This document shows positions 10,414-63,246 of a stretch of DNA of 64,000 nucleotides, piece after piece. A program made the translations under genes and the position numbers. The stretch spans positions 62,001 to 126,000 of IMG/VR virus record IMGVR_UViG_3300038463_000730; one strand, given 5' to 3'. Within the stretch, counting starts at the first letter, position 1. Each line of letters opens with the position of its first letter. The notes beneath the pieces were generated by a model. That model ran no database searches and was not told the origin of the DNA. It saw only the letters and a list, made by a program, of their open reading frames with translations.

Positions 10414-11283
10414 TTACATCCTTGTCAGATCTTGTAGCCAAGCGCCCCACGCCACCGGGTTGCCACCCGTTCCGGTAAAGTTACGAACTTGAATTTGTAC
10501 CTGCCCACTTGTAAATATAGCTTGCGCAGAATAACTCGTGCTTGATCCGATATAAATCGGATTTATCAACGGGTACCCGGGAGGGGTCGGAATCGATCCG
10601 GGTGGCGCAGGAAACGTGATCGATGTTGCGTTGGCGTGGAAATCAAGATGCGTAGAAAATTCGTTACCAGCACCATCTTGGCCAACGATCGCTACCTGCC
10701 AACGTCCCGGTCCTTGTGGAGTACGTGCTAATATTGTGTGCCATGCGCTATCTGTCGTTGTAATCGTTCCAGCAGCCGATGATGCCGGGTACCCTGTACC
10801 ATAAGCCATGATCGTTTCGGTTGCGCCGATTTCAAGTTTGTTTCCTGCACCACCGTACTCGTTACTAGGGATACCACCTAGTCCACCAGTAATTGCCGTG
10901 ATACTTTCAGGAAACCAATACTGTCCTGCTTGACTCCATGCCAACACATAACCATCTGTCGGAACGGCATTTAGAATACTCCTGCCTTGAAGACCAATAA
11001 CAAGTTGGCTAACGCTGTTTCCAGATAGGTCTCCACCAAACACTACTGATCCGAACGGAGATTCGGTCCAACTAGTGTTTAACAGACTAGACCCTAGCTG
11101 CCATAGTGTCTGTTCATTTTGAGTATAGACAAGCATTCCTTCTTTTCTATTAAGCATCGGAATGCTATCACGATCGGTAGTATTGGTTCGAATCTGAAAT
11201 CCGCCGTATCCATCGATGTCATCGTACATCGGGAACTGGCCATTGTTTTGTGGCTTAATCTTGCTTATCAGAGGTATTGGCAT
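10414..11283 (-). CDS. virion/tail-fibre-associated protein
   Basis: True start MPIPLISKIKPQNNGQFP at a TAATG overlap; RDSIPMLNRKEGMLVY motif; one GGDLSG...GYVLAW shaft repeat. Confidence 0.7.
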   Translation of the reverse strand: MPIPLISKIKPQNNGQFPMYDDIDGYGGFQIRTNTTDRDSIPMLNRKEGMLVYTQNEQTLWQLGSSLLNTSWTESPFGSVVFGGDLSGNSVSQLVIGLQGRSILNAVPTDGYVLAWSQAGQYWFPESITAITGGLGGIPSNEYGGAGNKLEIGATETIMAYGTGYPASSAAGTITTTDSAWHTILARTPQGPGRWQVAIVGQDGAGNEFSTHLDFHANATSITFPAPPGSIPTPPGYPLINPIYIGSSTSYSAQAIFTSGQVQIQVRNFTGTGGNPVAWGAWLQDLTRM

Positions 11284-12308
11284 TATTCCACCGTCACCGT
11301 TGTTGCACCGAGCCCGACGTTGTCGCTGACCCACAGTTGATATGTATCGACGTAACCGAAAGCGTTGGTAACCGAGATGCTGTTCGATACTAACGAAAAG
11401 CCTCCCGCGAATCCTCCGACGATGAACGTTGGAGTTCCGTAAGCAGTACGACACGCAAAGTAAATATGCTGGGTTCCACTGGCTGTAGTTGTAAATTGAG
11501 TTGAGCGCGTGTTGGTTAAGAACTGTCCAGACAAACTTTGGATGAATGCTGCCGTGTTGCCACCAGCTACGCCGGGACCGTAAAATGTTCGCTGAACCCA
11601 TTCATAGGTTGTTTGTGATGATTTCGTAACGACTCCTCCGTTTGAGGTCAGCGTGAATGTTACCGTTCCACCAAACACAAACTGATCATACGTATGAATA
11701 CTAGAGAAAGATGTTGGTGTCAGAATAACATTCTGTGGTGGGTTACCGGCATTATCGGTCAACACAGCCGTTACGGGAGACGTAGAATACGATGCAGCAA
11801 ACGCCGGATGAACTACCGGTTGGCCAACTTCGGCAAACGTGCCACCAGATAATGACACGACATAGGCAGGTAAAATCATGTCTTGAGTCAACCTACTGAA
11901 CACCGGATTCCCAGCCGGGTTCTCAATCACGGCGGCATATAACTGATTGATAACCGGAGGAAGAGAAGTAGATAGAGAAGTTACGTATTGATTTTTTGTC
12001 GCATCCCACGTCAATGCCGCTTTATCTATCGGTGTCATCGGCGAGATCGGATTACCGTAGAGGCCAACTACTATCGGGTTTGGATAGGTTCCAGCCAGGT
12101 CGCCACCAGCGAGCCCGGTTGCAATTACGTTACCAGTTCCGATGATTGGAGTCGTGATAGTATAGTCGATTGTAGCTGGTAGACTCAGTTCACTAGGTGT
12201 GTAACTGGAGAACTCGGCTGTAAAATCTGGCGTATTTAGAGATGTCCAGTAGACGTGCATCGATGGATTTGCCACCAAAGCAGCCCACATAATGTATTGT
12301 GTAGTCAT
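11283..12308 (-). CDS. virion/tail-fibre-associated protein
   Basis: AGGDLAGTYPNPIV repeat shared with the 1956-aa fibre; beta-rich C-terminus. Confidence 0.7.
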   Translation of the reverse strand: MTTQYIMWAALVANPSMHVYWTSLNTPDFTAEFSSYTPSELSLPATIDYTITTPIIGTGNVIATGLAGGDLAGTYPNPIVVGLYGNPISPMTPIDKAALTWDATKNQYVTSLSTSLPPVINQLYAAVIENPAGNPVFSRLTQDMILPAYVVSLSGGTFAEVGQPVVHPAFAASYSTSPVTAVLTDNAGNPPQNVILTPTSFSSIHTYDQFVFGGTVTFTLTSNGGVVTKSSQTTYEWVQRTFYGPGVAGGNTAAFIQSLSGQFLTNTRSTQFTTTASGTQHIYFACRTAYGTPTFIVGGFAGGFSLVSNSISVTNAFGYVDTYQLWVSDNVGLGATTVTVE

Positions 12309-12384
12309 GATCCTGAACTAAATACGTGTTTATTAGTTACGCTTCGTTCCTTCTGCATATCCACGTATTTCATAAGGAAAACAT
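12309..12384. promoter_or_regulatory. divergent promoter region with 9-bp inverted repeat
   Basis: AAATACGTG (12320-12328) / CACGTATTT (12362-12370); the same element lies 11-14 nt before each divergent ATG; AAGGA RBS on the plus strand. Confidence 0.55.
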
Positions 12385-15300
12385 ATGGCAACGGTCTACC
12401 CAAATCAGTTAGACACCTTGTTAAGTCTCACAGGAAGTGTTCAAGGTGTTCGAGATAGCGTAACTCCAATAAGCGCTACAAATATCAACACGCTAGCTAG
12501 CGCGATGATTCAACTCGAAACCGTTCTAGGTAACGCACATGGACTAGGCGGTGCGCCCCAAAGTATTTACGGCACAGTCGCAAATCGGCTAAATATACTG
12601 GAACAGATCGTCAACCAGGAAAGTGGAGCTGGTAACGTCGTCGTGTTCGGATCTGCCGAAATTGGTCAGACAATCATCTGGAACGGCTCGGTATGGACGC
12701 CTGGAACGAACTTCATCAACCAGAACATCCAAACGTCTGGTGAGTTAGTCTCCGGCCCGGCACTCAGCACGGCCAACACGACCGGTTTGTCTCAGCTCAC
12801 AGGAAAGCTGATTCTTAACGCGATCACACCGTTGAAAATATCCGACCCTAATCAAGGTATCATCTACTTTGATCAGACAGCTGCCCAGTTCTTAGTTTCA
12901 CAAAACGGCGGCTCATACATCCCACTTGTAGCAGGTGGAGGTGGTAATGCGGGTGGAGACCTAGCAGGCCTGTATCCGAACCCTTCTGTAGTTCGACTCT
13001 CCGGCGCAAACGTTCCGATCGGGTCCAGCTTAACCACCGGAAACGTTCTCCAGGTAGACGGGTACAGCTCTCTTACGTACGGGCCAATCAATCTTGGTGG
13101 TGGCGATGGATATGTCGTAGGTATTCTTCCGGCTGAAAATCAGGGAGCACAGACACTAGGTGGTGACCTGTCCGGCACGACCGAAGCGGCATTCGTACTT
13201 GGGCTTCGCGGTATCCCTATCTCGCCAACCAGCCCAAATGCTGACCAAGTGCTTACGTACAACGGAACGTACTGGATTCCATCAGATATCCCGGTTCCAA
13301 CAATCTACCTTTCAGGAGATGTTGTTGGTCCTAACACGGCAACGGTCGTTGAGAACATTAACGGGGCATCTGTACCACCGGCAGGCGGACTTATTACTGG
13401 CAACGTTCTTCAAGTTACCGGATTCGGTAGTTTGGGATACGGCCCGCTCGATTTGAGTGGCGGCTCAGACTATATTACTGGTGTCCTCCCGGCAGCAAAC
13501 CAAGACGCACAATCCATGTTTGGTGATGTCCATGGCAGCACGAACAGTTCGACTGTTATTGCTATCCAAAACATTCCAGTTAACAGCGGCAGTGTTTCGG
13601 TTGGACAAGCGATGTTCGGAACATCATTCAACGAATGGGGTCCGGCAACAATTTCTGGTGACATTATCTCTAGCAACGTGACACCAGGTTTGCTCACGGT
13701 TGGATATTTGCAGGGCAACTATGTACCGGCTGGAGCACTAGTAGAGGGACAGTTTTTTGTTGCAACATCGACGAACAGCTGGGCACCTACTACAATTTCT
13801 GGAGATATCAGCCCTAGTAACACGACCCCTGGTCAGCTTTCTGTTACAGGTATCCAAGGTTACTCGTTCTCGTCCTTTGCTCCCACCAAAGGGCAATTCG
13901 TCGTCGCTACAACGGGCGCAGGTTATGGACCAGTTACAATCAGCGGTGACGTTTCGGAATCTGGCACGATTCCTGGCAAACTTACTGTCTCCGGTATCAC
14001 GGGTGTCACGATCAGCGGTTCTCCGTTAGCGGGTAACGCGATCGTCGCCACGTCCGGAACGGCAGCAAGTTGGTCCAATGTTACGAACATTGGCGGCGTT
14101 ACGATTAGCGGTACTCCGTCAGCCAATCAGGTCATCGTCGCAACATCTAGTACGGCAGCATCGTGGCAAATAAACAGCCCGACCATCAACGGTGTAACGA
14201 TCAGTGGTACTCCGACAACCGGGCAGGTATTGGTTGCACTTACCAGCACGACTGCTGATTGGCAAACCTTCGGTGGAGCGTTCGCTGCGGGCGGAGATTT
14301 GTCCGGCACCTCGTCGTCACAGACTGTTATCAAGATACAGGGCACACCGGTTGTCAACACGGCTCCGACATCAAATCAGTTACTTCAGTACAATGGAACA
14401 AACTGGACACCTACAACAATTACATTGGCTGGTGATGTCACGGGTGGTCTAGCTGCTACCACGGTAACAAAGATTCAGGGACATTCCGTTCTATCGACAG
14501 CACCGTCTACTGGACAGGTTCTAGAATGGAATGGTTCGGCCTGGTCACCATCGAATGTTACAGAGATCCAGGGCTTCCCGGTTTCATCCGCAACACCACA
14601 AAATCAATACACATTGATATGGGATGCAGCAGACGGATACTGGAAGCCAGAGAGTCCGCTCGGCGGACCGCCATCAGGCCCGGCAAGCGGAGACCTCAGT
14701 GGATTCTATCCATATCCGATCGTCACCGGACTTGACGGTTACCAAATTGCATTCGGCGATCTAGGCCCAGACGAACAAGGATGGGTTGTTACATGGTCGT
14801 ATATCGATGGGTACTTCATTCTCGCGACACCGTCAAGCGGACCTCCATCCGGAATGGCCGGTGGAGATCTGTCAAGTGCCTATCCTAATCCGACTGTATC
14901 AAAGATAAATGGCAGCTCCGTTCCAGCCGGTGGTGCGCTAATAACTGGTAACGTTCTACAGGTTACCGGTACATCCGCTCTTGGATATGCTCCGATCAAT
15001 TTGGCCGGTGGTGCAAATTACATCACCGGTCTACTGCCTACTGCTAGCCAAGCTCAACAGACAATGGGTGGTGACCTGACCGGCACGACCGGTAGTGCAA
15101 CGGTCGCCTCGATCCAAGGACACGTTTTCACAACGAGTGGAACGAGCCCTGGTTATTTCATCATCGCGAACTCAACGTTCGGATACCAACCAGTTCAAAT
15201 TACTGGTGATGTTGCGGCTTCTGTTTCGACAATCGGAAAACTATCCGTCAATGCACTTAAAGGAATCACGCTCGGTGGAACGACTCCATCTGCTGGATAC

Positions 15301-18255
15301 ATCCTAACCTCGACATCAAGTACCACGGCAGATTGGGTCAGCCCATCGTCTTTGGGAGGAAGCTTCACAGCCGGTGGAGACTTGAGTGGTAGTAACACGA
15401 GCCAAACGGTTATTGGTCTTCGTAGTCACTCTGTTTCTGCTACAGCTCCGACAACAAATCAAGCATTGATATGGAGCGGTTCGGCATGGACACCGACAAC
15501 GATCACTCTAGCTGGTGATGTTACTGGTGGAACGGGAGCAACAACCGTTACAGCCCTGCGTGGCAACACAATTCAACCTGGCACATTGTCATCTGTTAAC
15601 GATGGTTACGCACTAACTTGGGTTAATGCTGCGTCACAATGGCAACCAAAAGCGATAGTCACTTCGACTATTGATGGTGTATTGGTCAGCGGTGTACCGA
15701 CATTTGGTCAAGTTCTAACCGCAACATCGGCAACAACAGCAGACTGGGAGACTCCAGCATCGGGTGGTCCGGCCGGTGGTGACCTAACAAGCAATTATCC
15801 AAATCCAACAATAGCCAAGATACAGGGTAACGCTGTTCTTACAGGAACACTTGGCCCGGCTCAAGATGGCTATCTTCTCACGTGGGTCAGTGCGTTTAGC
15901 GAATGGCGTGCCGAGCCACCTCCTGGTTCGTTCGTTCCAAGTGGAACGGGCCTCGTACATATCGTCAGCGGAGTAGAGCAACCGGCAGCGTCACTTATTG
16001 TAAATGCTGATGTCGATCCATCTGCTGCGATTGCGTATAGCAAACTTAGTTTGACAGGGGATATCGTAAATAGCGATATCTCTTCTAGTGCCGCAATTGC
16101 GTACAGCAAACTAAATCTAACAGGCGACATCGTTAACACAGATATCGCTACTGCCGCAGCGATTGCAGGAACGAAGATCAATCCAGCTTTCGGTTCACAG
16201 AATATCAGCACGACCGGAACGATCAGTACTGGTTCGGCAACGTTCACAGCGATTAAAGACAGTGGACTCGGCACGGGTGTCGTTCACTCGGACAGCTTTG
16301 GTAACCTAAGCAGTTTTGCTGTCAACCTTTCTGGCAGTGATGTTACGAGCACATTGCCAGTAGAAAATCAGGCTCATCAGATAATGGGTCAGGATGTCAC
16401 CGGAACAACGGCAGCTGCAACGGTTGTCGCGCTTCAGACCAATCCAATTCAATCTGGGATACTCAGTTCGATTCAGGATGGTTATGTACTGACATGGAAC
16501 GGAACGGTGTGGTTGGCTTTGGCTCTTCCGGAGACAAGCGGACCTCCATCCGGACCAGCCGGTGGCGATTTGACCGGTACATATCCTAACCCGACCGTTC
16601 AAGCGATCCAAGGCAATATGATCGAGCCAGGATTATTAACCATTACGCAAGATGGTTATGTTTTGACCTGGAACCACATCGCAAATCAATGGCAACCACA
16701 AGCCATCACAGCTGGTTCAGTCACGTTGGCCGGAGATGTATCGGGACCAGCTACATCGAATACAGTTCACAGCATCAATGGCAGTTCGGTTCCGACCGGT
16801 GGTTCACTCACAATCGGAACATTACTTCAGGTTGTCGGTAGCTCGGCACTATCTTATGCAGCGCTCAATCTTGCCAACTCGAACTCTGTAACCGGCGTTC
16901 TACCAGCAGGTAATCAAGCTGCACAGACATTGACCGGTGACGTTACCGGTTCGACTGCTGCCGATACAATCTCGGCAATCCAGGGTAACCCGGTTCTACT
17001 CGGTACACTCGGGTCTGCCCAAGATGGTTACGTAGCTACATGGAATGGCACTGATATTGTCATGCTACCAGTAACAGCAACTTCTGTTACGATGGGTGGT
17101 GATATCACGGGACCATCAGAAACTAGTACGATATCTAGCATTCAATCGAATCCTGTAGCTTTTGGTACACTCGGACCAGCTCAAGATGGTTATGTTGCGA
17201 CATGGAACGGGACTGAGTTCGTTATGCTTCCGGCGAATGGACCGGAGCCAATCACGACAACCATTTTGAACAATGTTTCTGCTAATGGTGCGTACGGAAC
17301 TCCTCCAACAAACTGGAACGCGAGCTATACGTCTGGCGCAAACTCCGTTATCATCTATGCCGATGCCGGTGGTTATACTGCAAGTGTAGGCGAAGGGCTT
17401 ACACTTACTCTATTCATTGATGGTAGCCCGGTCGTTGCTTCATCTGGATTCTTCAATCAAAGTGGAATTCATGGAGCGTTCCCAAGCATTGCGTTCGGAA
17501 CGACTCTTACAGCCGGAACTCATACGTTCTCGCTTCAAATGACCGGTACTGGAGCGAGTGCCGATGTAAATGACTTTGCATCGATCACGATTACCGAATT
17601 CGTTGGTGGCGGTGTAACGGCTGAATCAGTCTTGTTGGCTGGTGATGTTTACGGTTATTCAAATGCAAATACAGTAAACCGAATCAACGGAGCGAATGTT
17701 CCGGCTGCTGGTTCGCTAACGACTGGTAATCTGTTGCAGGTTATCGGGCCATCCACTCTTACGTACGGCGCTCTCAATTTGGCAGGTGGCTCGAATTTCG
17801 TATCTGGAGTTTTGCCGAACACAAATCAGCAAGCTCAGACTGTCGGTGGAGATCTTAGCGGGACAACGAATGCTGCAACCGTTGCCGCACTTAGTGGCAA
17901 CCTACTTAATCTCGGTACTCTCGGGCCAAGCCAAGACGGATACGTTGTTACATGGAATAGCACCGATAATGCGCTCGAAGCCCTACCGTTGATCACCGGT
18001 AGTGCAACGTTGTTCGGTGACGTAACAGGCCCGATCGCTACAACATTGTTGTCTCAGATTCAAGGTAACCCGATCGACATCGGAATACTCGGACCTAGCG
18101 AAGATGGATACGCTTTGATTTGGAGTAATACTGACTCTATGTTTATCATGGCGCCAGTTACTAACGAGGCATTAGAGCTAGATGGCGATGTTTCAGGCAC
18201 ACTTGAGAATAATACTGTCGGGTTCCGCAAAATGTTCTTATTGATGGGTGCGTAA
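12385..18255 (+). CDS. very long repetitive tail-fibre shaft protein (1956 aa)
   Basis: About 25 G-D-[LVI]-x-G...TV..IQG...P..GQ/DGYVLTWNG..W.P repeats; three 22-aa IVNxDxxxxAAIAYSKL repeats; MATVYPNQLD N-terminal anchor; ends FLLMGA. Confidence 0.8.
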   Translation: MATVYPNQLDTLLSLTGSVQGVRDSVTPISATNINTLASAMIQLETVLGNAHGLGGAPQSIYGTVANRLNILEQIVNQESGAGNVVVFGSAEIGQTIIWNGSVWTPGTNFINQNIQTSGELVSGPALSTANTTGLSQLTGKLILNAITPLKISDPNQGIIYFDQTAAQFLVSQNGGSYIPLVAGGGGNAGGDLAGLYPNPSVVRLSGANVPIGSSLTTGNVLQVDGYSSLTYGPINLGGGDGYVVGILPAENQGAQTLGGDLSGTTEAAFVLGLRGIPISPTSPNADQVLTYNGTYWIPSDIPVPTIYLSGDVVGPNTATVVENINGASVPPAGGLITGNVLQVTGFGSLGYGPLDLSGGSDYITGVLPAANQDAQSMFGDVHGSTNSSTVIAIQNIPVNSGSVSVGQAMFGTSFNEWGPATISGDIISSNVTPGLLTVGYLQGNYVPAGALVEGQFFVATSTNSWAPTTISGDISPSNTTPGQLSVTGIQGYSFSSFAPTKGQFVVATTGAGYGPVTISGDVSESGTIPGKLTVSGITGVTISGSPLAGNAIVATSGTAASWSNVTNIGGVTISGTPSANQVIVATSSTAASWQINSPTINGVTISGTPTTGQVLVALTSTTADWQTFGGAFAAGGDLSGTSSSQTVIKIQGTPVVNTAPTSNQLLQYNGTNWTPTTITLAGDVTGGLAATTVTKIQGHSVLSTAPSTGQVLEWNGSAWSPSNVTEIQGFPVSSATPQNQYTLIWDAADGYWKPESPLGGPPSGPASGDLSGFYPYPIVTGLDGYQIAFGDLGPDEQGWVVTWSYIDGYFILATPSSGPPSGMAGGDLSSAYPNPTVSKINGSSVPAGGALITGNVLQVTGTSALGYAPINLAGGANYITGLLPTASQAQQTMGGDLTGTTGSATVASIQGHVFTTSGTSPGYFIIANSTFGYQPVQITGDVAASVSTIGKLSVNALKGITLGGTTPSAGYILTSTSSTTADWVSPSSLGGSFTAGGDLSGSNTSQTVIGLRSHSVSATAPTTNQALIWSGSAWTPTTITLAGDVTGGTGATTVTALRGNTIQPGTLSSVNDGYALTWVNAASQWQPKAIVTSTIDGVLVSGVPTFGQVLTATSATTADWETPASGGPAGGDLTSNYPNPTIAKIQGNAVLTGTLGPAQDGYLLTWVSAFSEWRAEPPPGSFVPSGTGLVHIVSGVEQPAASLIVNADVDPSAAIAYSKLSLTGDIVNSDISSSAAIAYSKLNLTGDIVNTDIATAAAIAGTKINPAFGSQNISTTGTISTGSATFTAIKDSGLGTGVVHSDSFGNLSSFAVNLSGSDVTSTLPVENQAHQIMGQDVTGTTAAATVVALQTNPIQSGILSSIQDGYVLTWNGTVWLALALPETSGPPSGPAGGDLTGTYPNPTVQAIQGNMIEPGLLTITQDGYVLTWNHIANQWQPQAITAGSVTLAGDVSGPATSNTVHSINGSSVPTGGSLTIGTLLQVVGSSALSYAALNLANSNSVTGVLPAGNQAAQTLTGDVTGSTAADTISAIQGNPVLLGTLGSAQDGYVATWNGTDIVMLPVTATSVTMGGDITGPSETSTISSIQSNPVAFGTLGPAQDGYVATWNGTEFVMLPANGPEPITTTILNNVSANGAYGTPPTNWNASYTSGANSVIIYADAGGYTASVGEGLTLTLFIDGSPVVASSGFFNQSGIHGAFPSIAFGTTLTAGTHTFSLQMTGTGASADVNDFASITITEFVGGGVTAESVLLAGDVYGYSNANTVNRINGANVPAAGSLTTGNLLQVIGPSTLTYGALNLAGGSNFVSGVLPNTNQQAQTVGGDLSGTTNAATVAALSGNLLNLGTLGPSQDGYVVTWNSTDNALEALPLITGSATLFGDVTGPIATTLLSQIQGNPIDIGILGPSEDGYALIWSNTDSMFIMAPVTNEALELDGDVSGTLENNTVGFRKMFLLMGA
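15997..16180 (+). repeat. three tandem 66-bp (22-aa) coding repeats
   Basis: IVNADVDPSAAIAYSKLSLTGD / IVNSDISSSAAIAYSKLNLTGD / IVNTDIATAAAIAGTKI. Confidence 0.8.
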
Positions 18256-27914: not shown

Positions 27915-27934
27915 GCCTAACCTGTGGTTCAGAC

Positions 27935-29040: not shown

Positions 29041-29054
29041 GTTGATACGAATTC

Positions 29055-30350: not shown

Positions 30351-30368
30351 TAGTTTCCTGTCTGAAGA

Positions 30369-30752: not shown

Positions 30753-30788
30753 CTAAAAGGTATGTCAGAAAATGGATACGTAAGCCCG

Positions 30789-46718: not shown

Positions 46719-46732
46719 ATATCGCTTAATTC

Positions 46733-56300: not shown

Positions 56301-56547
56301 TCAGATCACTCGGCTGTGTTGCCGTGACAATCGGTTTGCCATCCAAGTTACCAACGACACTATCCGTGTTGAGTAGGATGTTGGGCGTGAGAGTGTTGAG
56401 CAGTACACCGGACCCGAAATGGTTGTTGACTACCGCAGTTACGGCTCCATCGTTGTGAGCCTGTTCCACCGTCATATTCTGAGCAGAGACCTGCTGAGAA
56501 TCAAACCATATGTTTTCTAACGTACTTACTGGTTGTCTTTGGGTCAT
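53338..56547 (-). CDS. large virion (baseplate/tail) protein with split dockerin-like Ca-binding repeats
   Basis: WFDSQQVSAQNMTVEQ N-terminus; GDVDGDGTVTQEDA and ADVNSNFIIDLQDV; follows the baseplate genes. Confidence 0.7.
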   Translation of the reverse strand: MTQRQPVSTLENIWFDSQQVSAQNMTVEQAHNDGAVTAVVNNHFGSGVLLNTLTPNILLNTDSVVGNLDGKPIVTATQPSDLINGVQLRLNMTNSAAFDRRAIKVAVFGLDFAGNLQYETFYFRNNEVQVSTKHFANVLSVLFNDMRGIVGTSFNLGGTLIIDEAPAFTISRDILGVAQDQSPNLFFRDLYLDPAYVTLGVLLSACCQGYDITSLNISTGYTQLRPLLSNDVTTQLGVKFQATTNNIQKITVLLAGGIWNQNPAPGAPQLTSTSNTFDDNLVLTLYQLQSSVSNSSQIVPQLAIDYDPSNIILAQISYSFNSLQATGITLDGYLQPVDFVLSNTTVGSGALTVGSYYAFTLKRSGATSEQFDFVMPTGQPTNSNTRDTLFNGTSWTDIPGETLWYRIYNDAAKITDGQGYDAGQGMVLPKTTSDPNTGATIDNIVRNIPFTTTQQYTAVMQAVLSQTNKQDNQTTGQPVFSKQQYVPKLSLMLDQTVTALQETTEPFIVGTIQDFNVKVLNSSQATLGGHPIPSSFLLYHFGIYKNKVLIKVDNNPLDGYNNVALVTALLNGSFTNAKFTVNTTPTSSPTYRVGSAQLFTEIYGDVDGDGTVTQEDASVAGSVLLGQSLVSSPTYQQYLVNTTPFVTSNVIQFTIDGYSGVGMLAPAAVALTDGYTASVATLNDIAFDFTSIPNITGYPIVLTDVSNPTNSGTFVIGSVIDLHTIAIEKTIVDDNYIRAFMRADVNSNFIIDLQDVNAISSYADGYSIGQPGNIVGTTFQIVELTLEEYDERYDDYYTGTAGNRNSILHQTPDLMTDDSSLASYNFVASPIPYTVVRQLTWQPSLVACTSNAKAVPATFSYLTSPPPPPLPPENGFVQYPVTTPVDPGRNDFFAPSNIVVGGQLVVPNGDYFKVDYEVGTIVLEIPPIDFAKEHTINIFTDCVSDFYGNGTTRLGYPAMRFADGTFIRNPSGLELNQCRFSVSLQSFYPNLAGISTDGYSGVIVDDTIGVYIDYTTGLLTLNFTHLQEDNILQTLNTKVQVTVLLKKAGFNNNVLLLNSTQLANILGLP

Positions 56548-56550: not shown

Positions 56551-59500
56551 TTAGGGTTCCTCATATGTAATCGTAGCTCGCGAAACGGCTGGCTTTAGGG
56601 TATTTATCAGTGTTTCTAGAACAGATTGCACATCTTTGCTTCCACTAACAATGCCAAATGAATCAATGATATTGATCGAAAAATCGAAGATGCCGAAATT
56701 CTCGTTTTTGAGCAAAGCGTAGTTTGTATTTAGCTTCTGCACGGTATTGAAATCCAGCAAATAGGTCGTATAAAGGTCCGTTGTGACCGGGAATGTCGCG
56801 GCAACGTTCGCGTTATAGTTGACATCAATCGGTACGCCGAACGCTATGAATGGCTGTCTCATGATATCGCTAATGCGTAAATTATCGATTAAACAGTTAC
56901 CAATATTCTTCCCATTATAGTCTGATCCAATATTGAACTGGTTTACTTGATCAGTTGTTTTGATCGATGTAAAGATGGCGCTCTGGCCAACGAAAGACTG
57001 GCCAAAAACGATATTCTGACCGAATAGCAATCCCTGACCGTACAACACGTTTCCATGCTCAAACCCATCTACAAAGAGGTGGATCTGGTCATTCGTGCCG
57101 CCTGAGTTGACGGTCCAAGTTGCCTTGACGCGGTGCCATGTTCCGGCTTGCCAGAAAATAGGAGTCCTGACCTGATAGTCATTGCCAGCTCCACGAATAT
57201 CGAACGTCAAATACCCGTACGGGTCCTTGTAGATGCTGAGTCGATCGCCTTTCAATCCGTTCGGAATGTAAGTTACGATCACAGGAGTCTGCTCATTTGG
57301 CAGCGGGTCGGACAGATTGATTGTCTGCAAGTCAGAACTGACCGAACCTTGTCCACCGTAGTAGTTGTAGCTCTGATTTCCGTACTGAAGAGTGACCGAC
57401 ACAACCGTTCCGATCAATCCGGCAACCTGCACGGTCGCACGGTTCGTGCTGCTAACCTGTTCCGTTATGATACCTGAGGCATCGAAATAGAATCGGTAGA
57501 CTGGGTCGTTGTATGTATCGATGAACGGATTGGCCCAGAACTCGATCGAGCCTGGAGTTCTGGTGTTCAGAAGGCCGAGGTTGTCCACGGTCATCGGTTG
57601 TTTATCCAAGATCACGCTCTGACCGAAATTCGGATTCACACTGGAACCATACTGAAGCAACGAACGATCTGCGTTGATGTAGAACGGAGCCGAGTTGGCA
57701 GCCGTGGCATCATTCATTGTCAACAACGTGAGTGTGTTTTTCGAAATCGGCGGAGGATTGATCGAGTTGAACAGTTGGGTGACCGAGCCAGTCATCGGGT
57801 TGACCGCTTCACCGACACGGGTATCGGACAACATGATCGAATCGATCCGTACCTGGTCAACAATCGCATTGATCTGGTGGCTTCCAGACAAGTCCGAACC
57901 AATATAGGTTGACTTCATCAACGGATCGAACTTTGCAGCAAGATACGTTGCATAGGTGAACTGATACGTTCCCTGTGTCAACAGGTACGGTTGTCCAGGT
58001 GTTGGTGCGTTTTCGAAGAAGAACGTTCCGTTCTGAAGTCCGTTTCGAACAGTGGTTGTGTTGAGGATTTCGTATGGAATAGCGTTTGGGTATGCCGGTG
58101 GACTAGCCTTTGTTCCAAGGAATGTTGCTGGGAATGGCGTAGCAACGGTCAAGTTGTTATTGTCCTGCACAGATACAATTTTGTAGTATCCAGCGGCAGC
58201 ACCAGCATTCATCCCTGGAAAAATGTGAATGTAATTTCCAACATCAATCGGAGTAAACAATGCATTAGTATCAGTAAAGGTTGTCTGCCCGATCGTTCCT
58301 TCTGGAGTATTGCCCCAGAAGACCTGGTAGCTGTATTGGATGACAGGATAGTTTGGGCTCGATTCCGACACGGTCAAGTAATCTGTTTCGAACACAGTCA
58401 ACACGAATGCATTCTGATTCAGGTTGATCGGATTGTACTCGGCTGTGATCGAACTGACGCAGAGGAACATCGTTCCGGTATCGAGTGTCTCTTCACCAGT
58501 GAAGGTGAGTGGCACGGATTCATAACCCGTCGATGTTAATCCATCGATCGTAACGGTTACAGGGAATGTGACATTCGTTCCAGCCAGCCGTACTGATAGT
58601 TTCCGGCCCGGATCTCCACGTCCAACGTTCGAACAGCTTGTGTACCCATCGAAGTTTGTTGCGGTCCACAAATAGTAACCGTCATTAACCGACTGCGATG
58701 GATAGACTGCGGTCTCGGTCATGAGAAACTTCGTAATCTTGACATCCGACAAACTCACCGGAGGTGGCAACACGGTCTGCAAGAAATTCTGACAGTTGCC
58801 CCAAGCGTAGTAACGCTGGGTCACGTATTTGAAGTTCAATCCGAGCGGCTTGATCAGTAATGTATCTCCGGCCTCGGCGCCATTCGATAGAATAATCTGG
58901 TTGTAGCCATCACTTTCCGTAATCTCGTAATACGGAAACAATGCGCGGGGTCCAGGGATCTCCGTTTCAACTCCAGAGCGCAGAACCGTAACAGCAATGT
59001 TTTTGTAAAGATCAATTCTGGTCTTTACATCAATCGTGAGCTGGTTCACAGAGTAGTTTACCGATGTCAAACTCAATGGCATCGAGGCACTCAAAGTCAG
59101 TTGGTTACCATTTACGTTAGTAATGGTGTAGTATGTATCGAAGCCAATCTCCTGAATGTACAGTTTATCATTGACCTCAATTCCAGCGGCATCGAAGCTC
59201 TGTCCTGCCGTTACGATGGCCGAGCCAGCAATCGTGACCATGTCATCGCCTGCTGTGATGGGGCGCGTAATGACTGAGACAATTTCCTCCGGGTTCGGCG
59301 TGCGGAACCGCTGTCCGAAATTGATCGGAATCTTCGTTCCATAACGAATGAGATTCGGAACCTCCAACCCGTCGATAAACAGGTGGATCTCGTCCTGGCT
59401 TGACTGAGAGTTCAAGGTCCACGATGTTGCAACGAAGTGAGGTTGGTTCGATATCCAATTGCTTACGTCCGCGCTGACCTGGTATTGAGCCCGATTGTTA

Positions 59501-62500
59501 TCGATGACGCGGAAGTTGAGGTACCCTGCCGGGTCCTTGTAAATCGAGATTCGGTTACGATCCGGGACATCTCCCACATCGAGCAAGTAGTGGAAGTAGT
59601 CAGCAACGAAACAAAATCCCTGATGAACCGATGTATCGTTGAACACGGCTCGGTTACCAGCGCTGGTAATAGAAGCGTACCCATCACTCGGGTACATATA
59701 CTTCGCATCAAACAACTCACCATCGGTTGTCATCGTGATAGAGTACGCAAGATCGGTATCGTTGACCACGTCAACGTACCAGCGATTATAGCTACCGTAG
59801 CCATCAGGGCACAGGTAGATGAACACGCCTTCTTTATGTTTGTTCGGTTTACCAAGTGGCGAAATTGGTCCACGTTTCGAAACAGTGAAGAACTGATTTC
59901 CAAGTGTATCTGTCTTGTAAACAGGGTGAACTTCGCCCGCACCAATAAAGACCCGGCTCTCGTTGACGAATGCCCCGTTTGCACGAATGATGAATGTCAG
60001 TTCTGAATCATTGTCGATTCCGTTCCATTGAGGAAGAATCCACGATGAGAACGTTCCTTCATCGATACTGATACGCGAACATGTTGGAACGACGACGTTC
60101 TGTCCCGGCCCCTGCAAGAGCAGTCCGTTGTCGTACTTGGCAGGCAACACTTGCGGGTTGTTGTTGACCTGTGGAGGCTCGGGATACAGGAATGCGCTAC
60201 CGAGTGACCATAGCTCGAAGATGCTTTCTTCAATCTGTGGCGGCACCTGTGTGATGGTCTGAACCATGTTAGTCATCGCACCGATCGTCGGTCCCTTCGG
60301 GAGCGACCCCATCGCCGCAATTAAACAGTTACGATAGTTCTCGCGGTCAAACGTATCATCGAATACGCTGAGCAATGGAATGTTGATCAGGGTTCCGAAG
60401 TTCTTCAGCAACGCATCACGCAATGCTCCAACCTTGTACGTAACGTAGTATTGGTCGCCTGCCGATATCGAAGCTGAGTTACGGAAGTCTAGATAGTTGT
60501 CTCCGTACTCGTAGTCAACGATGATCTGATCTGCCAGGTAAGTGTAGTCGAGGTAGTAACCGCCCTTGTCGTAGTCCAGCACGACACGGGAACCTGATGT
60601 AATTGTTGCCGTTACGGTCACGATCACGTTGTCACCGTTCTGCGGAGAACCGGTTCCGGCCAGTGTCAACACAATCGGATTGCCAATAGCATACGAACTG
60701 TAACCTAGTACAGCGTTGTCAGATAGCCTGGTCAACGTGAACGTCAACGAGATGTTCGGAGACAAGTAAGTCAGATCGAACCCAGTGTTCAAGAAGTATT
60801 GGCTACCTACCTTGTTGACCACTTGCAAACTCGATACAACCAACGGGCTCATATTGACCGAGTGATCAAGGAACGTTGTTGCCGAAGCGAAATTGATCGG
60901 GCTAGGATTAAACAGAAGGTCGTTGAACTCGAAGGCTGAGCGCATAGCTCCGACCGAGCTGGAGATACCTGGAGTAAACACGGCGTTCATGAAGACACCG
61001 ACTGCTCCACCGACCAAGAAGTATGGGAAAAGCGGATTGTTGTTCAGAATCTTCTCGTCTGACAAGTCGAACGTCGATGGAAGAATCGAACCATCGGTAA
61101 AGCTTGTATACGTAAAGGTCTCGTTCGCCGGTTGAGACATACTGATCTTGTAATAGATATTGAGTGGCGCGATAACATGTGGGAACTGTGGAATTATCTC
61201 TGGCCCACGGTACGAAACAGTCCCTATATCTTGGCTCTGGTCCGTGGTAACGGCGACATAAATAACACCGTCAACATAATCAACCATGTACTGGCCAACA
61301 GCTGTCAATCGAACAAGATTGTTTACCTGTGTATCATCCGCATCGAAATAGACTTCGCGCTGGAAGACCGATGACATCGATGGAACCAAACTCGTGTTGA
61401 CAGATGACCCGATACAGTCTTCCGTAGCCGAAATGATATTGTTGTTTTGCAGATCGATCTGGAAAATAGTCTGACCGTTGTTTATCGTTTGATTGATAAA
61501 CAGTGTTTCATTTAGGATTTGCTGAAACGCGGCGCGTTCTTCAGTCTGGGTCGGAATATCGGGTGGTGAAGGGAAGGTGAAGAAGACGAGGTCATTCTCC
61601 CAGCGAGTAACGGTGTAGGCCTGGCCCTGTGTTTCGTTGAAGATACGGAACACATCCGTGACCGGGCTATTCTGGACACGCAATGCATTCAAGTTTGGAA
61701 TAATCTGGTTGTTGATATTCTCAGCCAACACCTCAACGTGAACGTCAGCAACGTAGTCAATGTTCGGCACGAACACATCTTCAAAAGCAAATGCGATGTT
61801 CGCGCCCGTTCCGATCAACTGACTTGTTGGGAGCGCTACCAAATCAGCCGTATCGGTCGCGTAGACGTAATCGATAAGAGGTTGGAACGTATAGAGATAG
61901 TTGTACGTGGCTAACGGAGGGAAGGGACCGGTGCCATTGTTTGAACGGTCTGCACCATAGACGTAAACTGTTCCAGTGGTGTAATCGACCGAGTACTCTC
62001 CTGGATTGGAAGGAAGTTCTTGAAACGAAAACTGTAGTTCGGTCTTGAACGCCGGGTGAACGGCCGAGAGCGCCGGATTGGCATTTGGATCAAGGAACTG
62101 AACGCCTTTCAATGTCAGCGCATTTCCATTCTGATCAACAATTGGAGAATTTTTGAGGTTGAAAATGTTCTCGATCGATGGAACGACTTCTCGTACCGAT
62201 GGAATCACTTTCGTTACCGTTACAGAGACCGGGTTGACGTTTCTCCCTAGATTCTTGTACTCATAGTTCGCTACGATGTACGCAATGTTCGTAATGCTAA
62301 AGTTCGCATCTGTCAAAACGATATCGTTCAAACGAAACTGATTGCTGGCTAACGTTGCATACGGCGACGCATCCTGCGTATCGTATCTGGCATCAAGAAC
62401 TTGGTATCCCAAACCAGCTAGGTTGTACTGGTAGAACGTGCTACCATTTGGCAGAAGCCCATTGTAGAAGAACGTCAAACTTGTCAGTACAATTACGTTC

Positions 62501-63246
62501 GGGTTTTGAACGGTCAAAATCAAATCATTGGTATTGAATGTACCGACCTGATCGGTTGACCCGGCTTCAAGTCGTTCATCAACAATGCTGATCTGTCGTA
62601 ACGAAACAAGTGACGTATCGAAATCGGAAATGGTTATCGCGTTGTTTGCCGTGTACCCGGTTGGGTTTGGCGCGACACGGAGAACTTCGTACGTTCCTTC
62701 TTGACCAAGGCGATCGTACGGGCCTGTTCCACGAGTATGAACCTCATCCACGATGCTCTTCGTCAGGTAGTTCTCGTTCCCCATCTGGAGAATTGAGTAG
62801 TAGGCCTGAGACAAAAAGAACGCGGCAGTCTGGAGGTAGTTGTAGATGACCGACCCAGGCTCTAGGTTGTAGATGTTGTTTCTTAGATAGTTCGTAAAAT
62901 TGGTGAAGACCGGGTTGGCAGGATCATCCGGGCCCAGTACGAGAGTCGAGTTGTTACGCCCGTCCTCGATGAGGAACTGGGTCGCATTGATATCAGAGAA
63001 TCGAGTTGTGGATGTCGAGACGAACGTTACCGTGTACACACCAAGAGGCGTGAGCGGCTGGACCGTAAGCGTCAGTGTCGGACCACTGATACTTGCGAAA
63101 AGTACCGTAGGTACCGGCACAGTTGTTGACTGTGGCGCAATCTGAATGTTTGCAATACCGATCTCTGGATTGAGGTCAGCTGAAAACTTGCACACAATTT
63201 GTGTGCTCGATGGCGTCGTAAGCTGAATGAGCCTTAGATTTCCCAT
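56551..63246 (-). CDS. giant baseplate-wedge-like virion protein with LamG-type domains (2231 aa)
   Basis: Central ALLKNFGTLI...DRENYRNCLIAAMGSLPKGPT (tail-protein-I-like); two GT/SxxxWxxP...HxVxxTW...IHLFxDG...IDxxRI LamG-like units; ends LKPAVSRATITY. Confidence 0.7.
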   Translation of the reverse strand: MGNLRLIQLTTPSSTQIVCKFSADLNPEIGIANIQIAPQSTTVPVPTVLFASISGPTLTLTVQPLTPLGVYTVTFVSTSTTRFSDINATQFLIEDGRNNSTLVLGPDDPANPVFTNFTNYLRNNIYNLEPGSVIYNYLQTAAFFLSQAYYSILQMGNENYLTKSIVDEVHTRGTGPYDRLGQEGTYEVLRVAPNPTGYTANNAITISDFDTSLVSLRQISIVDERLEAGSTDQVGTFNTNDLILTVQNPNVIVLTSLTFFYNGLLPNGSTFYQYNLAGLGYQVLDARYDTQDASPYATLASNQFRLNDIVLTDANFSITNIAYIVANYEYKNLGRNVNPVSVTVTKVIPSVREVVPSIENIFNLKNSPIVDQNGNALTLKGVQFLDPNANPALSAVHPAFKTELQFSFQELPSNPGEYSVDYTTGTVYVYGADRSNNGTGPFPPLATYNYLYTFQPLIDYVYATDTADLVALPTSQLIGTGANIAFAFEDVFVPNIDYVADVHVEVLAENINNQIIPNLNALRVQNSPVTDVFRIFNETQGQAYTVTRWENDLVFFTFPSPPDIPTQTEERAAFQQILNETLFINQTINNGQTIFQIDLQNNNIISATEDCIGSSVNTSLVPSMSSVFQREVYFDADDTQVNNLVRLTAVGQYMVDYVDGVIYVAVTTDQSQDIGTVSYRGPEIIPQFPHVIAPLNIYYKISMSQPANETFTYTSFTDGSILPSTFDLSDEKILNNNPLFPYFLVGGAVGVFMNAVFTPGISSSVGAMRSAFEFNDLLFNPSPINFASATTFLDHSVNMSPLVVSSLQVVNKVGSQYFLNTGFDLTYLSPNISLTFTLTRLSDNAVLGYSSYAIGNPIVLTLAGTGSPQNGDNVIVTVTATITSGSRVVLDYDKGGYYLDYTYLADQIIVDYEYGDNYLDFRNSASISAGDQYYVTYKVGALRDALLKNFGTLINIPLLSVFDDTFDRENYRNCLIAAMGSLPKGPTIGAMTNMVQTITQVPPQIEESIFELWSLGSAFLYPEPPQVNNNPQVLPAKYDNGLLLQGPGQNVVVPTCSRISIDEGTFSSWILPQWNGIDNDSELTFIIRANGAFVNESRVFIGAGEVHPVYKTDTLGNQFFTVSKRGPISPLGKPNKHKEGVFIYLCPDGYGSYNRWYVDVVNDTDLAYSITMTTDGELFDAKYMYPSDGYASITSAGNRAVFNDTSVHQGFCFVADYFHYLLDVGDVPDRNRISIYKDPAGYLNFRVIDNNRAQYQVSADVSNWISNQPHFVATSWTLNSQSSQDEIHLFIDGLEVPNLIRYGTKIPINFGQRFRTPNPEEIVSVITRPITAGDDMVTIAGSAIVTAGQSFDAAGIEVNDKLYIQEIGFDTYYTITNVNGNQLTLSASMPLSLTSVNYSVNQLTIDVKTRIDLYKNIAVTVLRSGVETEIPGPRALFPYYEITESDGYNQIILSNGAEAGDTLLIKPLGLNFKYVTQRYYAWGNCQNFLQTVLPPPVSLSDVKITKFLMTETAVYPSQSVNDGYYLWTATNFDGYTSCSNVGRGDPGRKLSVRLAGTNVTFPVTVTIDGLTSTGYESVPLTFTGEETLDTGTMFLCVSSITAEYNPINLNQNAFVLTVFETDYLTVSESSPNYPVIQYSYQVFWGNTPEGTIGQTTFTDTNALFTPIDVGNYIHIFPGMNAGAAAGYYKIVSVQDNNNLTVATPFPATFLGTKASPPAYPNAIPYEILNTTTVRNGLQNGTFFFENAPTPGQPYLLTQGTYQFTYATYLAAKFDPLMKSTYIGSDLSGSHQINAIVDQVRIDSIMLSDTRVGEAVNPMTGSVTQLFNSINPPPISKNTLTLLTMNDATAANSAPFYINADRSLLQYGSSVNPNFGQSVILDKQPMTVDNLGLLNTRTPGSIEFWANPFIDTYNDPVYRFYFDASGIITEQVSSTNRATVQVAGLIGTVVSVTLQYGNQSYNYYGGQGSVSSDLQTINLSDPLPNEQTPVIVTYIPNGLKGDRLSIYKDPYGYLTFDIRGAGNDYQVRTPIFWQAGTWHRVKATWTVNSGGTNDQIHLFVDGFEHGNVLYGQGLLFGQNIVFGQSFVGQSAIFTSIKTTDQVNQFNIGSDYNGKNIGNCLIDNLRISDIMRQPFIAFGVPIDVNYNANVAATFPVTTDLYTTYLLDFNTVQKLNTNYALLKNENFGIFDFSINIIDSFGIVSGSKDVQSVLETLINTLKPAVSRATITYEEP

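Follow-up and report, generated by a model that had tools for sequence, protein, structure and literature searches.

Tail, baseplate and fibre proteins of a widespread clade of 0.4–0.5 Mb phages carry far more Asp-Gly-Tyr (DGY) tripeptides than expected, and these tripeptides are gained and lost in loops in the manner of a modification tag. This can suggest that phage enzymes attach sugars to tyrosine on the virion, although the evidence for such a modification is at present circumstantial and comes from sequence alone. The motif was first noticed in a 64,000-nucleotide stretch of DNA (hereafter, the window; positions 62,001 to 126,000 of IMG/VR record IMGVR_UViG_3300038463_000730) belonging to a 435-kb genome.

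DGY in the window and in the whole genome

Our independent ORF translation of the window recovered exactly 28 DGY, as counted in the first-pass annotation, and the observation proved to be real and stronger than initially described. Specifically, 28 of 57 DG dipeptides in virion ORFs were followed by Y, compared with 0 of 52 in all other ORFs (Fisher p = 2e-10). When the fibre was excluded, the figures were 15 of 41 against 0 of 52 (p = 8e-7). The ORFs that contain DGY, together with the neighbouring genes considered below, are as follows.

12385..18255 (+), 1956-aa repetitive tail fibre, with 13 DGY in 16 DG, of which 8 sit in the repeat G.L....DGY.LTW
10414..11601 (-), 395-aa ORF (start uncertain), with 2 DGY, one of them in the fibre-type repeat
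18265..20895 (+), 876-aa Gly-rich fibre protein, with 1 DGY inside the motif GGDL.G.YPNPSVV that it shares with the 1956-aa fibre
25689..25979 (+), 96-aa ORF at the end of the fibre gene block, with 1 DGY
53338..56547 (-), 1069-aa baseplate-module protein without internal repeats, with 6 DGY in 12 DG (residues 331, 558, 656, 673, 764 and 997)
56551..63246 (-), 2231-aa baseplate-module protein with two LamG/ConA-like domains, with 5 DGY in 12 DG
63271..64000 (-), C-terminal part of a 1271-aa gp6-like baseplate wedge protein that runs out of the window, and whose 2 DGY lie beyond the window
52607..53302 (-), 231-aa protein of unknown function between the baseplate gene and the GT4 gene, present in part of the clade
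51497..52582 (-), GT4/GT1-family (GT-B) glycosyltransferase with no TM helix, the inferred candidate initiating enzyme
50624..51454 (-), GT2 glycosyltransferase, soluble-type
49620..50639 (-), 339-aa virus-only protein of unknown function with an N-terminal TM segment, conserved between the GT genes
48300..49193 (-), second GT2 glycosyltransferase, soluble-type
46733..47695 (-), dTDP-glucose 4,6-dehydratase (RmlB-like; TIGR01181, 345 bits against a curated cut-off of 365)
4476..5486 (-), GT-B homolog (Glyco_trans_1_3), belonging to a second module (GT-B, 216-aa protein, FAD oxidoreductase) that a divergent relative keeps
6512..6961 (-), dual-specificity (CX5R, DSPc) phosphatase

Several details of the first-pass annotation needed correction. 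Nine of the 28 DGY in the window (8 in the fibre and 1 in the 395-aa ORF) come from the single repeat G.L....DGY.LTW. The gene it placed at 10414–11283 is an ORF that runs to 11601 and overlaps another ORF, hence the uncertain start, but both DGY also lie in the shorter version. Its statement that DGY is restricted to virion proteins holds for the window only: genome-wide, 18 DGY lie outside the structural block, at near-background frequency (18 of 308 DG). The glycosyltransferases, the RmlB, the GT-B homolog and the CX5R phosphatase that it listed were all confirmed.

Enrichment was then computed over the whole genome and its relatives, as had been proposed beforehand. DGY was the most over-represented tripeptide of the 435-kb genome (72 observed against 22.9 expected; p = 2e-16), and in the 72–182 kb block it accounted for 54 of 219 DG. 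It was also the top genome-wide tripeptide in a relative with 35% GC (p = 2e-23), compared with 48% GC here. The nine-base codon combinations encoding DGY were mixed, so that the signal is at the protein level, and 72 of 102 nucleotide matches were in frame. Our ORF sets are crude greedy calls.

Only the ordered D-G-Y was enriched. In virion ORFs outside the fibre, 41 of 203 DG were followed by Y, compared with 4 of 197 for NGY, 1 of 71 for EGY and 3 of 284 for SGY. DGF was not enriched, and the permutations DYG, GDY, GYD, YDG and YGD were at background.

Distribution of DGY among related and unrelated phages

Across 82 related loci, 1048 of 2896 DG (36%) in baseplate proteins were followed by Y, compared with 29 of 730 (4%) in the adjacent enzymes. 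This differs from T4-like baseplate ORFs, where the figure was 78 of 1014 (7.7%), and DGY was unremarkable in the T4-like gp7, gp6 and gp10 families. Phage G, whose major capsid protein is 52% identical, showed only 9 of 276 (3%) in its first 260 kb and has no GT4 homolog. Nonetheless, a mild 1.7-fold excess of Y after DG exists both in T4-like baseplates and in the non-virion ORFs of this genome, so part of the signal is structural.

With regard to the fibre, DGY behaved as a switch-like lineage trait. Among 120 fibre homologs, 41 had 0 DGY in 498 DG, while the other 79 had 643 DGY in 1087 DG. Ten of the 41 that were picked by bacterial source name or by a very long contig were all DGY-free, and one was confirmed to sit in a bacterial chromosome. 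The same repeat slot is xGQ (T/S/N/D-G-Q in cellular copies) in the first group and DGY (the phage copies) in the second. The fibre genes themselves are not conserved between clade members, yet the motif is.

DGY was not found throughout the virion. The major capsid protein has no DGY, a 1246-aa fibre-like protein has 0 of 16 DG followed by Y, and the 1613-aa protein that we take to be the tape measure (by size alone) has 0 of 4.

Positional turnover and structural context

DGY occupied more alignment columns than any other tripeptide in two baseplate families that lack internal repeats. In 120 homologs of the 1069-aa protein there were 583 DGY in 1549 DG (24.6 DGY expected), distributed over 57 columns. 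In 71 homologs of the 2231-aa protein there were 442 DGY against 37.6 expected over 102 columns, and DGY ranked 1 of 6366 tripeptides. Some columns of the 1069-aa family were well conserved (101, 72 and 62 of 120 sequences), but positions turn over, and the query protein lacks three of the family's common sites and has three rare ones. The count per protein was under-dispersed (mean 4.9, variance 3.7).

The Tyr of the motif was almost never exchanged for Phe. Phe made up 0.4% and 1.8% of the alternatives at DGY Tyr columns, compared with 29% and 26% at other Tyr columns, which indicates that the hydroxyl matters. The usual alternatives were gaps, S, N, T, V and D.

To evaluate where the sites lie, we used an AF2 model of the 1069-aa protein (pLDDT 85.9), the one family modelled. 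Sites 656 and 673 are predicted two-residue hairpin turns, with Y starting the next strand, and the other four are loops. Of the 57 family columns, 47 lie in loops or in insertions relative to the modelled protein. The tight hairpin turns are a structural context that an enzyme might reach poorly after folding.

Candidate modification genes

The only GT2 (two) and GT1/GT4 (one) genes of the 435-kb genome lie next to the baseplate genes, and they have no TM helices. The GT4 was found downstream of the baseplate gene in every related locus with downstream sequence. An RmlA-like gene lies elsewhere in the genome, whereas no RmlC was found. No Pkinase, Sulfotransfer_3, GT8 or Wzy_C (O-oligosaccharyltransferase) gene was detected in the genome. 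The GT-B, 216-aa protein and FAD oxidoreductase module is conserved in a divergent relative (G002) that keeps the DGY signature, but the DSP phosphatase was not detected in the 400 kb of this relative that we examined, which weakens the alternative based on the phosphatase.

Interpretation of the motif

The interpretation offered in the first-pass annotation, a convergently acquired recognition motif for a phage-encoded modification and most simply O-glycosylation of Tyr, is partly supported by our results. Its core, that DGY is a convergently acquired recognition motif rather than a product of repeat expansion or composition, is well supported by the specificity for the ordered tripeptide, its appearance at 57 and 102 different columns in two non-repetitive families, its location mostly in loops or insertions of the modelled family, the near absence of exchange for Phe, and its clade specificity with respect to T4-like phages, phage G and cellular fibre homologs. 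The chemistry is only circumstantially favoured, and the wording "glycan-coated virion" is not supported, given that the capsid protein has no DGY.

In our preferred reading, DGY is a short linear motif kept at high density, with positional turnover, in loops and turns of tail, baseplate and fibre proteins of an uncultured clade of phage-G-like huge phages, where some clade-specific trans-acting factor reads it. The most likely reader would be a soluble phage glycosyltransferase acting in the cytoplasm on the Tyr hydroxyl, with the Asp at position -2 and the Gly at -1 as recognition elements. The conserved GT4 would initiate and the two GT2 enzymes would extend, using a sugar derived from dTDP-4-keto-6-deoxyglucose made by the phage's RmlA-like and RmlB genes. 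The product would be a glycan decoration of the host-contacting end of the virion. What our analysis establishes are the motif statistics, the evolutionary behaviour of the motif, the gene content and the synteny, whereas we infer that the motif is modified at all, that Tyr is the acceptor and that these glycosyltransferases are the writers. There is no chemical evidence of any modification, and we consider this reading tentative, with a probability of roughly 0.4.

These arguments need to be interpreted with caution. To our knowledge, no GT4 or GT2 enzyme is known to glycosylate Tyr, and the closest solved structures are only remote. The GT cluster is universal in the clade, so its co-occurrence with DGY cannot be separated from shared ancestry, and the available contrasts are one cultured outgroup (phage G) and cellular fibre homologs. 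It is also possible that the glycosyltransferases serve another purpose, such as envelope or DNA glycosylation, or Ser/Thr glycosylation of the Gly-rich fibres.

Among the alternatives, the one that survives best, though we regard it as unlikely, is a non-covalent functional motif. In this view, Asp carboxylate and Tyr hydroxyl would form a small surface patch that binds host glycans or metal ions, or that docks a decoration or assembly protein, multiplied over the tail tip for avidity. This would be consistent with the enrichment in host-contacting parts (baseplate, fibres) and absence from the capsid protein, and the loop location and preference for Tyr over Phe fit a hydrogen-bonding ligand contact. 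Loops rich in Asp, Gly, Tyr and Ser are typical of binding surfaces. However, a tripeptide in about 160 unrelated structural contexts is unlikely to form one defined binding geometry, and only one of the six residue orders is enriched. The all-or-none distribution across lineages of homologous fibres fits the presence or absence of a reader better than binding to varied hosts, and the motif is conserved where the fibre genes are not.

Less likely still is a sequon for a different covalent chemistry at Tyr or Asp, such as phosphorylation, sulfation, nucleotidylation, oxidation to DOPA, a cross-link, or modification by a host enzyme, in which case the writer would not be among the recognised genes. 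The same motif statistics apply to this reading. In addition, the DSPc phosphatase and an FAD-dependent oxidoreductase of unknown substrate lie next to the fibre genes, the module containing the oxidoreductase is conserved in G002, and basic residues are depleted around the motif. That no Pkinase or Sulfotransfer_3 gene was found in the genome and no DSP phosphatase in the 400 kb examined of G002 argues against it, and no positive evidence points to any particular chemistry.

We consider it similarly unlikely that DGY is purely a structural idiom of this lineage, with an Asp-Gly turn followed by a strand-initiating Tyr that would stabilise beta-hairpins and loops in very large virion proteins. 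The two hairpin sites in the model, the well-conserved columns, the mild excess in T4-like virion proteins (with contexts such as DGYVLYG and DGYVWEY) and the conserved fibre repeat are in line with this view. Nonetheless, Asn-Gly is at least as good a turn former as Asp-Gly but is not similarly followed by Y (4 of 197), Phe hardly ever substitutes, and the alternatives at the Tyr column are polar residues, beta-branched V/I or gaps. Furthermore, positions turn over, many sites lie in lineage-specific insertions, homologous fibre repeats elsewhere use xGQ at the same slot, and phage G and T4-like phages lack the signal.

The nine DGY from one fibre repeat and the crude ORF calls would fit an artefactual pattern. 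However, an artefact of chance, amino-acid composition, repeat expansion, a DNA-level signal or ORF calling is contradicted by the probabilities in two genomes of different GC, the persistence of the signal without the fibre and in repeat-free families, the codon and reading-frame data, and the controls in adjacent enzymes, T4-like phages and phage G, while a maturation-protease site is improbable because, by inference, five to thirteen such sites would shred each structural protein.

Comparison with known systems

Short acid-anchored glycosylation sequons occur in bacteria, namely D/E-X-N-X-S/T of Campylobacter PglB and the Bacteroidota O-glycosylation motif D-(S/T)-(A/I/L/V/M/T). These are likewise motifs of three to five residues with an Asp or Glu close to the acceptor, scattered over many unrelated surface proteins, and in DGY the Asp is at -2 from the putative acceptor, as in the PglB sequon. 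Those systems transfer lipid-linked glycans in the periplasm through membrane oligosaccharyltransferases onto Asn or Ser/Thr, whereas here no Wzy_C-type transferase was found, the glycosyltransferases are soluble-type, the putative acceptor is Tyr, and the targets are cytoplasmically assembled virion proteins.

Tyrosine O-glycosylation is established on S-layer proteins (Paenibacillus alvei SpaA, Thermoanaerobacter species), where an O-glycosidic linkage to Tyr on a self-assembling surface protein is often made through a rhamnose-containing adaptor that needs the dTDP-sugar pathway (PMC2943079). The phage encodes RmlB-like and RmlA-like enzymes, but no RmlC was found. The S-layer glycan is built on a lipid carrier and transferred outside the cytoplasm by an O-oligosaccharyltransferase at a few specific tyrosines, and the review uses neither "consensus" nor "sequon" (PMC2943079).

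Phage-encoded glycosyltransferases that modify virion proteins, with a proposed role in shielding, are reported for mycobacteriophages (Freeman et al. 2023, as described in PMC12619734). In those phages the glycans sit at the C-termini of the capsid and tail-tube subunits, with no tripeptide motif reported, whereas DGY is dispersed in loops of baseplate and fibre proteins.

Bacillus phage G (Donellivirus gee), the nearest cultured relative, has no homolog of the 1069-aa baseplate protein. Besides the capsid protein, it shares a similar genome size class (498 kb) and a distantly related tail sheath.

The evolutionary behaviour of DGY resembles sequon turnover in the glycan shields of enveloped animal viruses (N-X-S/T in HIV Env and influenza HA), where the density of a short motif is maintained while individual positions are gained and lost in surface loops and insertions. 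Those viruses use the host's ER machinery and an Asn acceptor, whereas here the motif, the putative enzymes and the cytoplasmic setting would all belong to the phage.

Occurrence of DGY in the window and across the genome

Translation of a greedy, non-overlapping ORF set showed that the window contains exactly 28 DGY tripeptides, distributed over six ORFs as 13, 6, 5, 2, 1 and 1, and the observation made in the first-pass annotation therefore held. Virion ORFs contained 28 DGY in 57 DG, whereas all other ORFs of the window contained 0 in 52 (Fisher p = 2e-10); without the fibre, the figures were 15 of 41 against 0 of 52 (p = 8e-7). Eight of the fibre sites and one site in the 395-aa ORF belong to a single repeat (G.L....DGY.LTW), while the remaining sites were in unrelated contexts. 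The 395-aa ORF (10414-11601, -) overlaps a second long ORF on the same strand (11283-12308, -) by 318 nt in a different frame, so that either its true start is uncertain or a frameshift or programmed shift is involved. The nine-base codon combinations that encode DGY were mixed, and 72 of the 102 GAYGGNTAY matches in the genome were in frame, so selection acts on the protein and a DNA-level signal can be rejected.

The window corresponds to bases 62001-126000 of a single 434,688-bp IMG/VR record (G000 hereafter), which CheckV rated as 100% complete. IMG/VR labels this record as 'provirus', which looks like a classification artefact. In the whole genome (626 ORFs), DGY was the most over-represented of all tripeptides, with 72 occurrences in 527 DG against 22.9 expected (p = 2e-16). 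The structural block (72-182 kb; Tyr frequency 3.75%) accounted for 54 DGY in 219 DG, and the rest of the genome for 18 in 308, which is near background. GGG, PPP and P-x-P tripeptides were also over-represented genome-wide. PHROGs confirmed that the block is structural, as it holds a gp6-like baseplate wedge protein, a tail sheath, a major capsid protein and a fibre-like protein. However, the motif was not found everywhere in the virion. The following proteins were exceptions:

G000 180137-181153 (outside the window; 17137-18153, -, in L005, our numbering of a stretch of this record): major capsid protein (338 aa, phrog_2522), with 1 DG and 0 DGY
G000 170346-174086 (outside the window; L005 7346-11086, -): 1246-aa fibre-like protein (phrog_1980), with 16 DG and no DGY, a striking exception inside a DGY-rich block
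A 1613-aa protein, taken to be the tape measure on size alone, with 0 DGY in 4 DG

Specificity of the motif

In virion ORFs outside the fibre, only the ordered D-G-Y was enriched. DGY accounted for 41 of 203 DG, compared with 4 of 197 for NGY, 1 of 71 for EGY and 3 of 284 for SGY, and DAY and DSY were at background. The other five orderings of D, G and Y were not enriched. The residue after Y was often small (G, S, T, A), and Lys and Arg were depleted on both sides of the motif. Composition alone is rejected as an explanation, because the permutations were not enriched and a relative with 35% GC showed the same signal (see below).

DGY in related loci and in control phages

DNA and protein searches of the 1069-aa baseplate-module gene against cultured phages, as well as a pattern scan of IMG/VR, returned no match. 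In contrast, a search of metagenomic proteins and an alignment-based scan recovered hundreds of homologs at 31-50% identity, on contigs of up to about 0.5 Mb. Among 120 of these homologs we counted 583 DGY in 1549 DG, with only 9 DGF and 1 DGW. Across 82 related loci, the three baseplate proteins had 1048 DGY in 2896 DG (36%; Tyr frequency 4.6%), whereas the genes immediately downstream had 29 in 730 (4.0%; Tyr frequency 4.2%), and every locus showed this contrast. A complete, divergent relative (435,004 bp, of which 400 kb was examined; 35.5% GC against 48% here) again had DGY as its top tripeptide, with 101 occurrences against 30.9 expected (p = 2e-23), concentrated in its structural block.

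The baseplate ORFs of T4-like phages (31 loci) had 78 DGY in 1014 DG (7.7%) and 34 DGF. The T4 Seg GIY-YIG homing endonucleases (phage T4 1253-1918, 10196-10618, 36561-37235 and 42057-42674) all share DGYMGSG or DGYLGSG, which inflates naive DGY counts in T4, and they were excluded from this control. In alignments of the T4-like gp7, gp6 and gp10 families, DGY ranked 850 of 3773, was absent, and ranked 1795 of 3019, respectively. Bacillus phage G, the nearest cultured relative, had 9 DGY in 276 DG in its first 260 kb (rank 6613) and no GT4 homolog. The major capsid protein of G000 is 52% identical to gp27 of phage G and 80-83% identical among clade members. The clade is an uncultured sister group of the largest cultured phage, with different baseplate proteins. 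The DGY excess is therefore not a general property of myovirus baseplates or of huge phages, although there is a mild generic excess of about 1.7-fold.

Evolutionary turnover and predicted structural context

In the 1069-aa family, DGY occupied 57 different alignment columns, the most of any tripeptide, and composition predicted only 24.6 occurrences against the 583 observed. In the family of the 2231-aa baseplate-module protein, it ranked first of 6366 tripeptides, with 102 columns. Self-BLAST of 100-aa segments (whole-protein comparisons hid internal repeats) showed that neither protein has internal repeats carrying DGY, in contrast to the eight fibre sites and the one site in the 395-aa ORF that are copies of one repeat. 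A few columns were widely conserved (101, 72 and 62 of 120 sequences), but most were sporadic, and many lay in lineage-specific insertions. The protein of the window lacks three of the common sites and has three rare ones. Copies per protein were under-dispersed (mean 4.9, variance 3.7), although relatedness of the sequences limits what this shows. At DGY Tyr columns, the alternatives in other sequences were gaps, S, N, T, V, I and D, and Phe made up 0.4% and 1.8% of them in the two families, compared with 29% and 26% at the other variable Tyr columns of the same alignments. The motif is therefore gained and lost as a unit, and the hydroxyl appears indispensable.

An AF2 prediction from the 120-sequence alignment gave a confident model of the 1069-aa protein (pLDDT 85.9, pTM 0.80), whereas the prediction from the single sequence was uninformative (pLDDT 31). 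Foldseek against the PDB returned no significant fold match for this protein. Of the 57 DGY columns, 28 mapped to loops, 19 to insertions relative to the model and 10 to secondary-structure elements; accessibility is inferred only from secondary-structure class and substitution patterns. Among the six sites of the protein in the window, 656 and 673 are predicted two-residue beta-hairpin turns with Tyr starting the next strand, and the other four are in longer loops. Three further features of the two baseplate-module proteins are:

About 54688-54741 (-), residues 603-620 of the 1069-aa protein: a dockerin/EF-hand-like calcium-binding loop, predicted from sequence (YGDVDGDGTVTQEDA); many homologs are pre-annotated with PF00404 (Dockerin_1)
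About 59347-59556 and 57043-57246 (-), residues 1231-1300 and 2001-2068 of the 2231-aa protein: two copies of a LamG/ConA-like segment (44% identical to each other) with the motif IHLF[IV]DG[LF]E; they hold the only DGF or DGL-type DG sites of that kind, and neither carries DGY
About 58612-58620 (-): an RGD tripeptide ten residues after a DGY in the 2231-aa protein (NFDGYTSCSNVGRGDPG), which is probably there by chance

A natural contrast in the fibre repeat

Among 120 homologs of the repeat region of the fibre, the distribution of DGY was bimodal. A DGY-free group of 41 proteins had 0 DGY in 498 DG, and the residues before hydrophobic-x-T-W were most often T/S/N/D-G-Q. A DGY-rich group of 79 proteins had 643 DGY in 1087 DG, with D-G-Y at this position in 180 of 314 cases. 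Ten proteins that we picked by bacterial source name (Bacteroidota, Kapabacteria, Ignavibacteria, Planctomycetota) or very long contig were all DGY-free. One of the DGY-free proteins, a DUF5907 protein (gene 8810-12742 of a contig of NCBI GCA_006365095.1), is cellular, as it lies among housekeeping genes (EF-G, formyltransferase, HtrA) and T9SS cargo (Por_Secre_tail) proteins, which hints at an FCB-group origin or host for the fibre module. At least seven DGY-rich homologs lie on the same contigs as members of the 1069-aa family, as inferred from contigs of matching size. The trait behaves as an all-or-none property of a lineage, which is what a trans-acting reader would produce.

The fibre (12385-18255, +) and the 876-aa protein (18265-20895, +) share the motif GGDL.G.YPNPSVV. 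The Gly-rich fibre proteins (14-17% Gly) are not collagen-like, as they have no long G-X-Y runs, and the 976-aa protein had weak YadA-head and ice-binding beta-roll hits.

Candidate readers of the motif

Directly downstream of the baseplate genes lie, in order, a 231-aa protein without an assigned function, a GT4, a GT2, a 339-aa TM-anchored protein, a 147-aa ORF, a second GT2, two small ORFs, a dTDP-glucose 4,6-dehydratase (RmlB-like) and a tubulin/TubZ homolog, followed later by a UvsW-like helicase. The 339-aa protein belongs to a virus-only family, has an N-terminal TM segment and matched no annotated family. The gene order is syntenic in relatives, and the GT4 was present in every related locus that has downstream sequence, including the 31-37% identity subclade. 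These are the only GT2 and GT1/GT4 genes detected in the 435-kb genome, and the GTs lack TM helices; their substrate can only be inferred. An RmlA-like gene lies elsewhere in the genome, and no RmlC was found. No Pkinase, Sulfotransfer_3, GT8 or Wzy_C gene was detected in the genome. The tubulin/TubZ-family gene and a second enzyme module are located as follows:

45363-46769 (-): tubulin/TubZ-family gene (PF00091, E = 4e-15), just downstream of the GT and RmlB genes and kept in synteny in most relatives at 39-70% identity
4476-8169 (-): second enzyme module next to the fibre genes, comprising a GT-B homolog (336 aa), a 216-aa protein, a 117-aa ORF, a DSPc phosphatase (149 aa) and an FAD-dependent oxidoreductase with an FAD-depend_C-type fold (403 aa)

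In the second module, the GT-B homolog, the 216-aa protein and the oxidoreductase are also adjacent in the divergent relative, but the phosphatase was not found there. The tubulin/TubZ homolog suggests that this huge-phage clade may use a PhuZ/TubZ-like cytoskeleton.

Interpretation of the DGY signature

The interpretation offered by the first-pass annotation, in which DGY is a recognition motif for a phage-encoded modification of Tyr on a glycan-coated virion, is partly supported. In our judgement, it is about 85% likely that DGY is a selected short linear motif read by something specific to this clade. The counts, the turnover of sites and the gene content and synteny are direct results of our comparisons, whereas the attachment of a glycan at the motif, the role of Tyr as acceptor and the activity of the adjacent GTs on it are inferred from sequence. 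We put Tyr O-glycosylation by these soluble GTs at a probability of about 0.4. This reading needs to be interpreted with caution considering that there is no chemical evidence for it, that GT4 and GT2 enzymes are not known to act on Tyr, and that the GT cluster is universal in the clade (the best GT4 hits were all clade members), so its co-occurrence with DGY is confounded with ancestry. In addition, the absence of the motif from the capsid protein means that a 'glycan-coated virion' should be narrowed to the tail, baseplate and fibre apparatus.

A more specific, and more tentative, version of this hypothesis is that a globally distributed clade of 0.4-0.5 Mb phage-G-like phages encodes a cytoplasmic, sequon-directed protein glycosylation system with Tyr as acceptor. 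In this view, D-G-Y would be the sequon, a soluble GT4 the writer, GT2 enzymes the extenders and a dTDP-derived deoxysugar the sugar, and the system would decorate the baseplate, the fibres and other tail-associated proteins, with sequons evolving by gain and loss as in the glycan shields of enveloped animal viruses.

Among the alternatives, a non-covalent binding or docking role appears unlikely but survives best. Another covalent modification is slightly less likely. A purely structural idiom is about equally doubtful: for a generic type I' beta-turn, Asn-Gly should behave like Asp-Gly and aromatic residues should be interchangeable after the turn, but NGY was rare (4 of 197 against 41 of 203 for DGY), DGF occurred 9 times against 583 DGY in the 120 homologs, and the Phe share at DGY Tyr columns was only 0.4-1.8%. 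An artefact or a protease site can be all but dismissed.

The proposed system would work most like acid-anchored bacterial sequons and like sequon turnover in viral glycan shields. It shares its putative acceptor residue with S-layer Tyr O-glycosylation (PMC2943079). That process is en bloc and depends on an O-oligosaccharyltransferase and a lipid-carrier pathway, and neither is indicated here, as no Wzy_C match was found in the genome and the GTs lack TM helices. The proposed system shares phage-encoded GTs with mycobacteriophage virion glycosylation (as cited in PMC12619734), in which glycans are on the C-termini of the major capsid and tail-tube subunits; here, the DGY pattern is dispersed rather than C-terminal and is not on the capsid. 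Literature searches on DGY in phages, tyrosine glycosylation in phages and glycosylated tail fibres found no report of such a signature, and the 'moraphage' paper describes a different lineage of at most 307 kb.

If DGY marks a modification site, this would be the first sequon-type code for protein modification in a phage, as well as the first case of Tyr-directed glycosylation by soluble viral enzymes. It would show that huge phages can decorate their host-recognition apparatus with their own glycans, which bears on host range, on evasion of receptor-mimicking or antibody-like defences and on particle stability, and it would supply a three-residue tag and cognate enzymes of possible use in glycoengineering. 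Even if the chemistry differs, the statistical signature is exceptionally clean, being the top tripeptide in two genomes of different GC content, all-or-none between lineages and with Tyr very rarely replaced by Phe, and it therefore points to an undescribed trans-acting reader of virion proteins.

Other genes in the window

A separate stretch of the window (27090-34072, -) holds the following genes:

27090-27914 (-): M24 methionine aminopeptidase
29055-30350 (-): PIN-PhoH fusion
31571-34072 (-): ribonucleotide reductase large subunit with a C-terminal TSCPD domain
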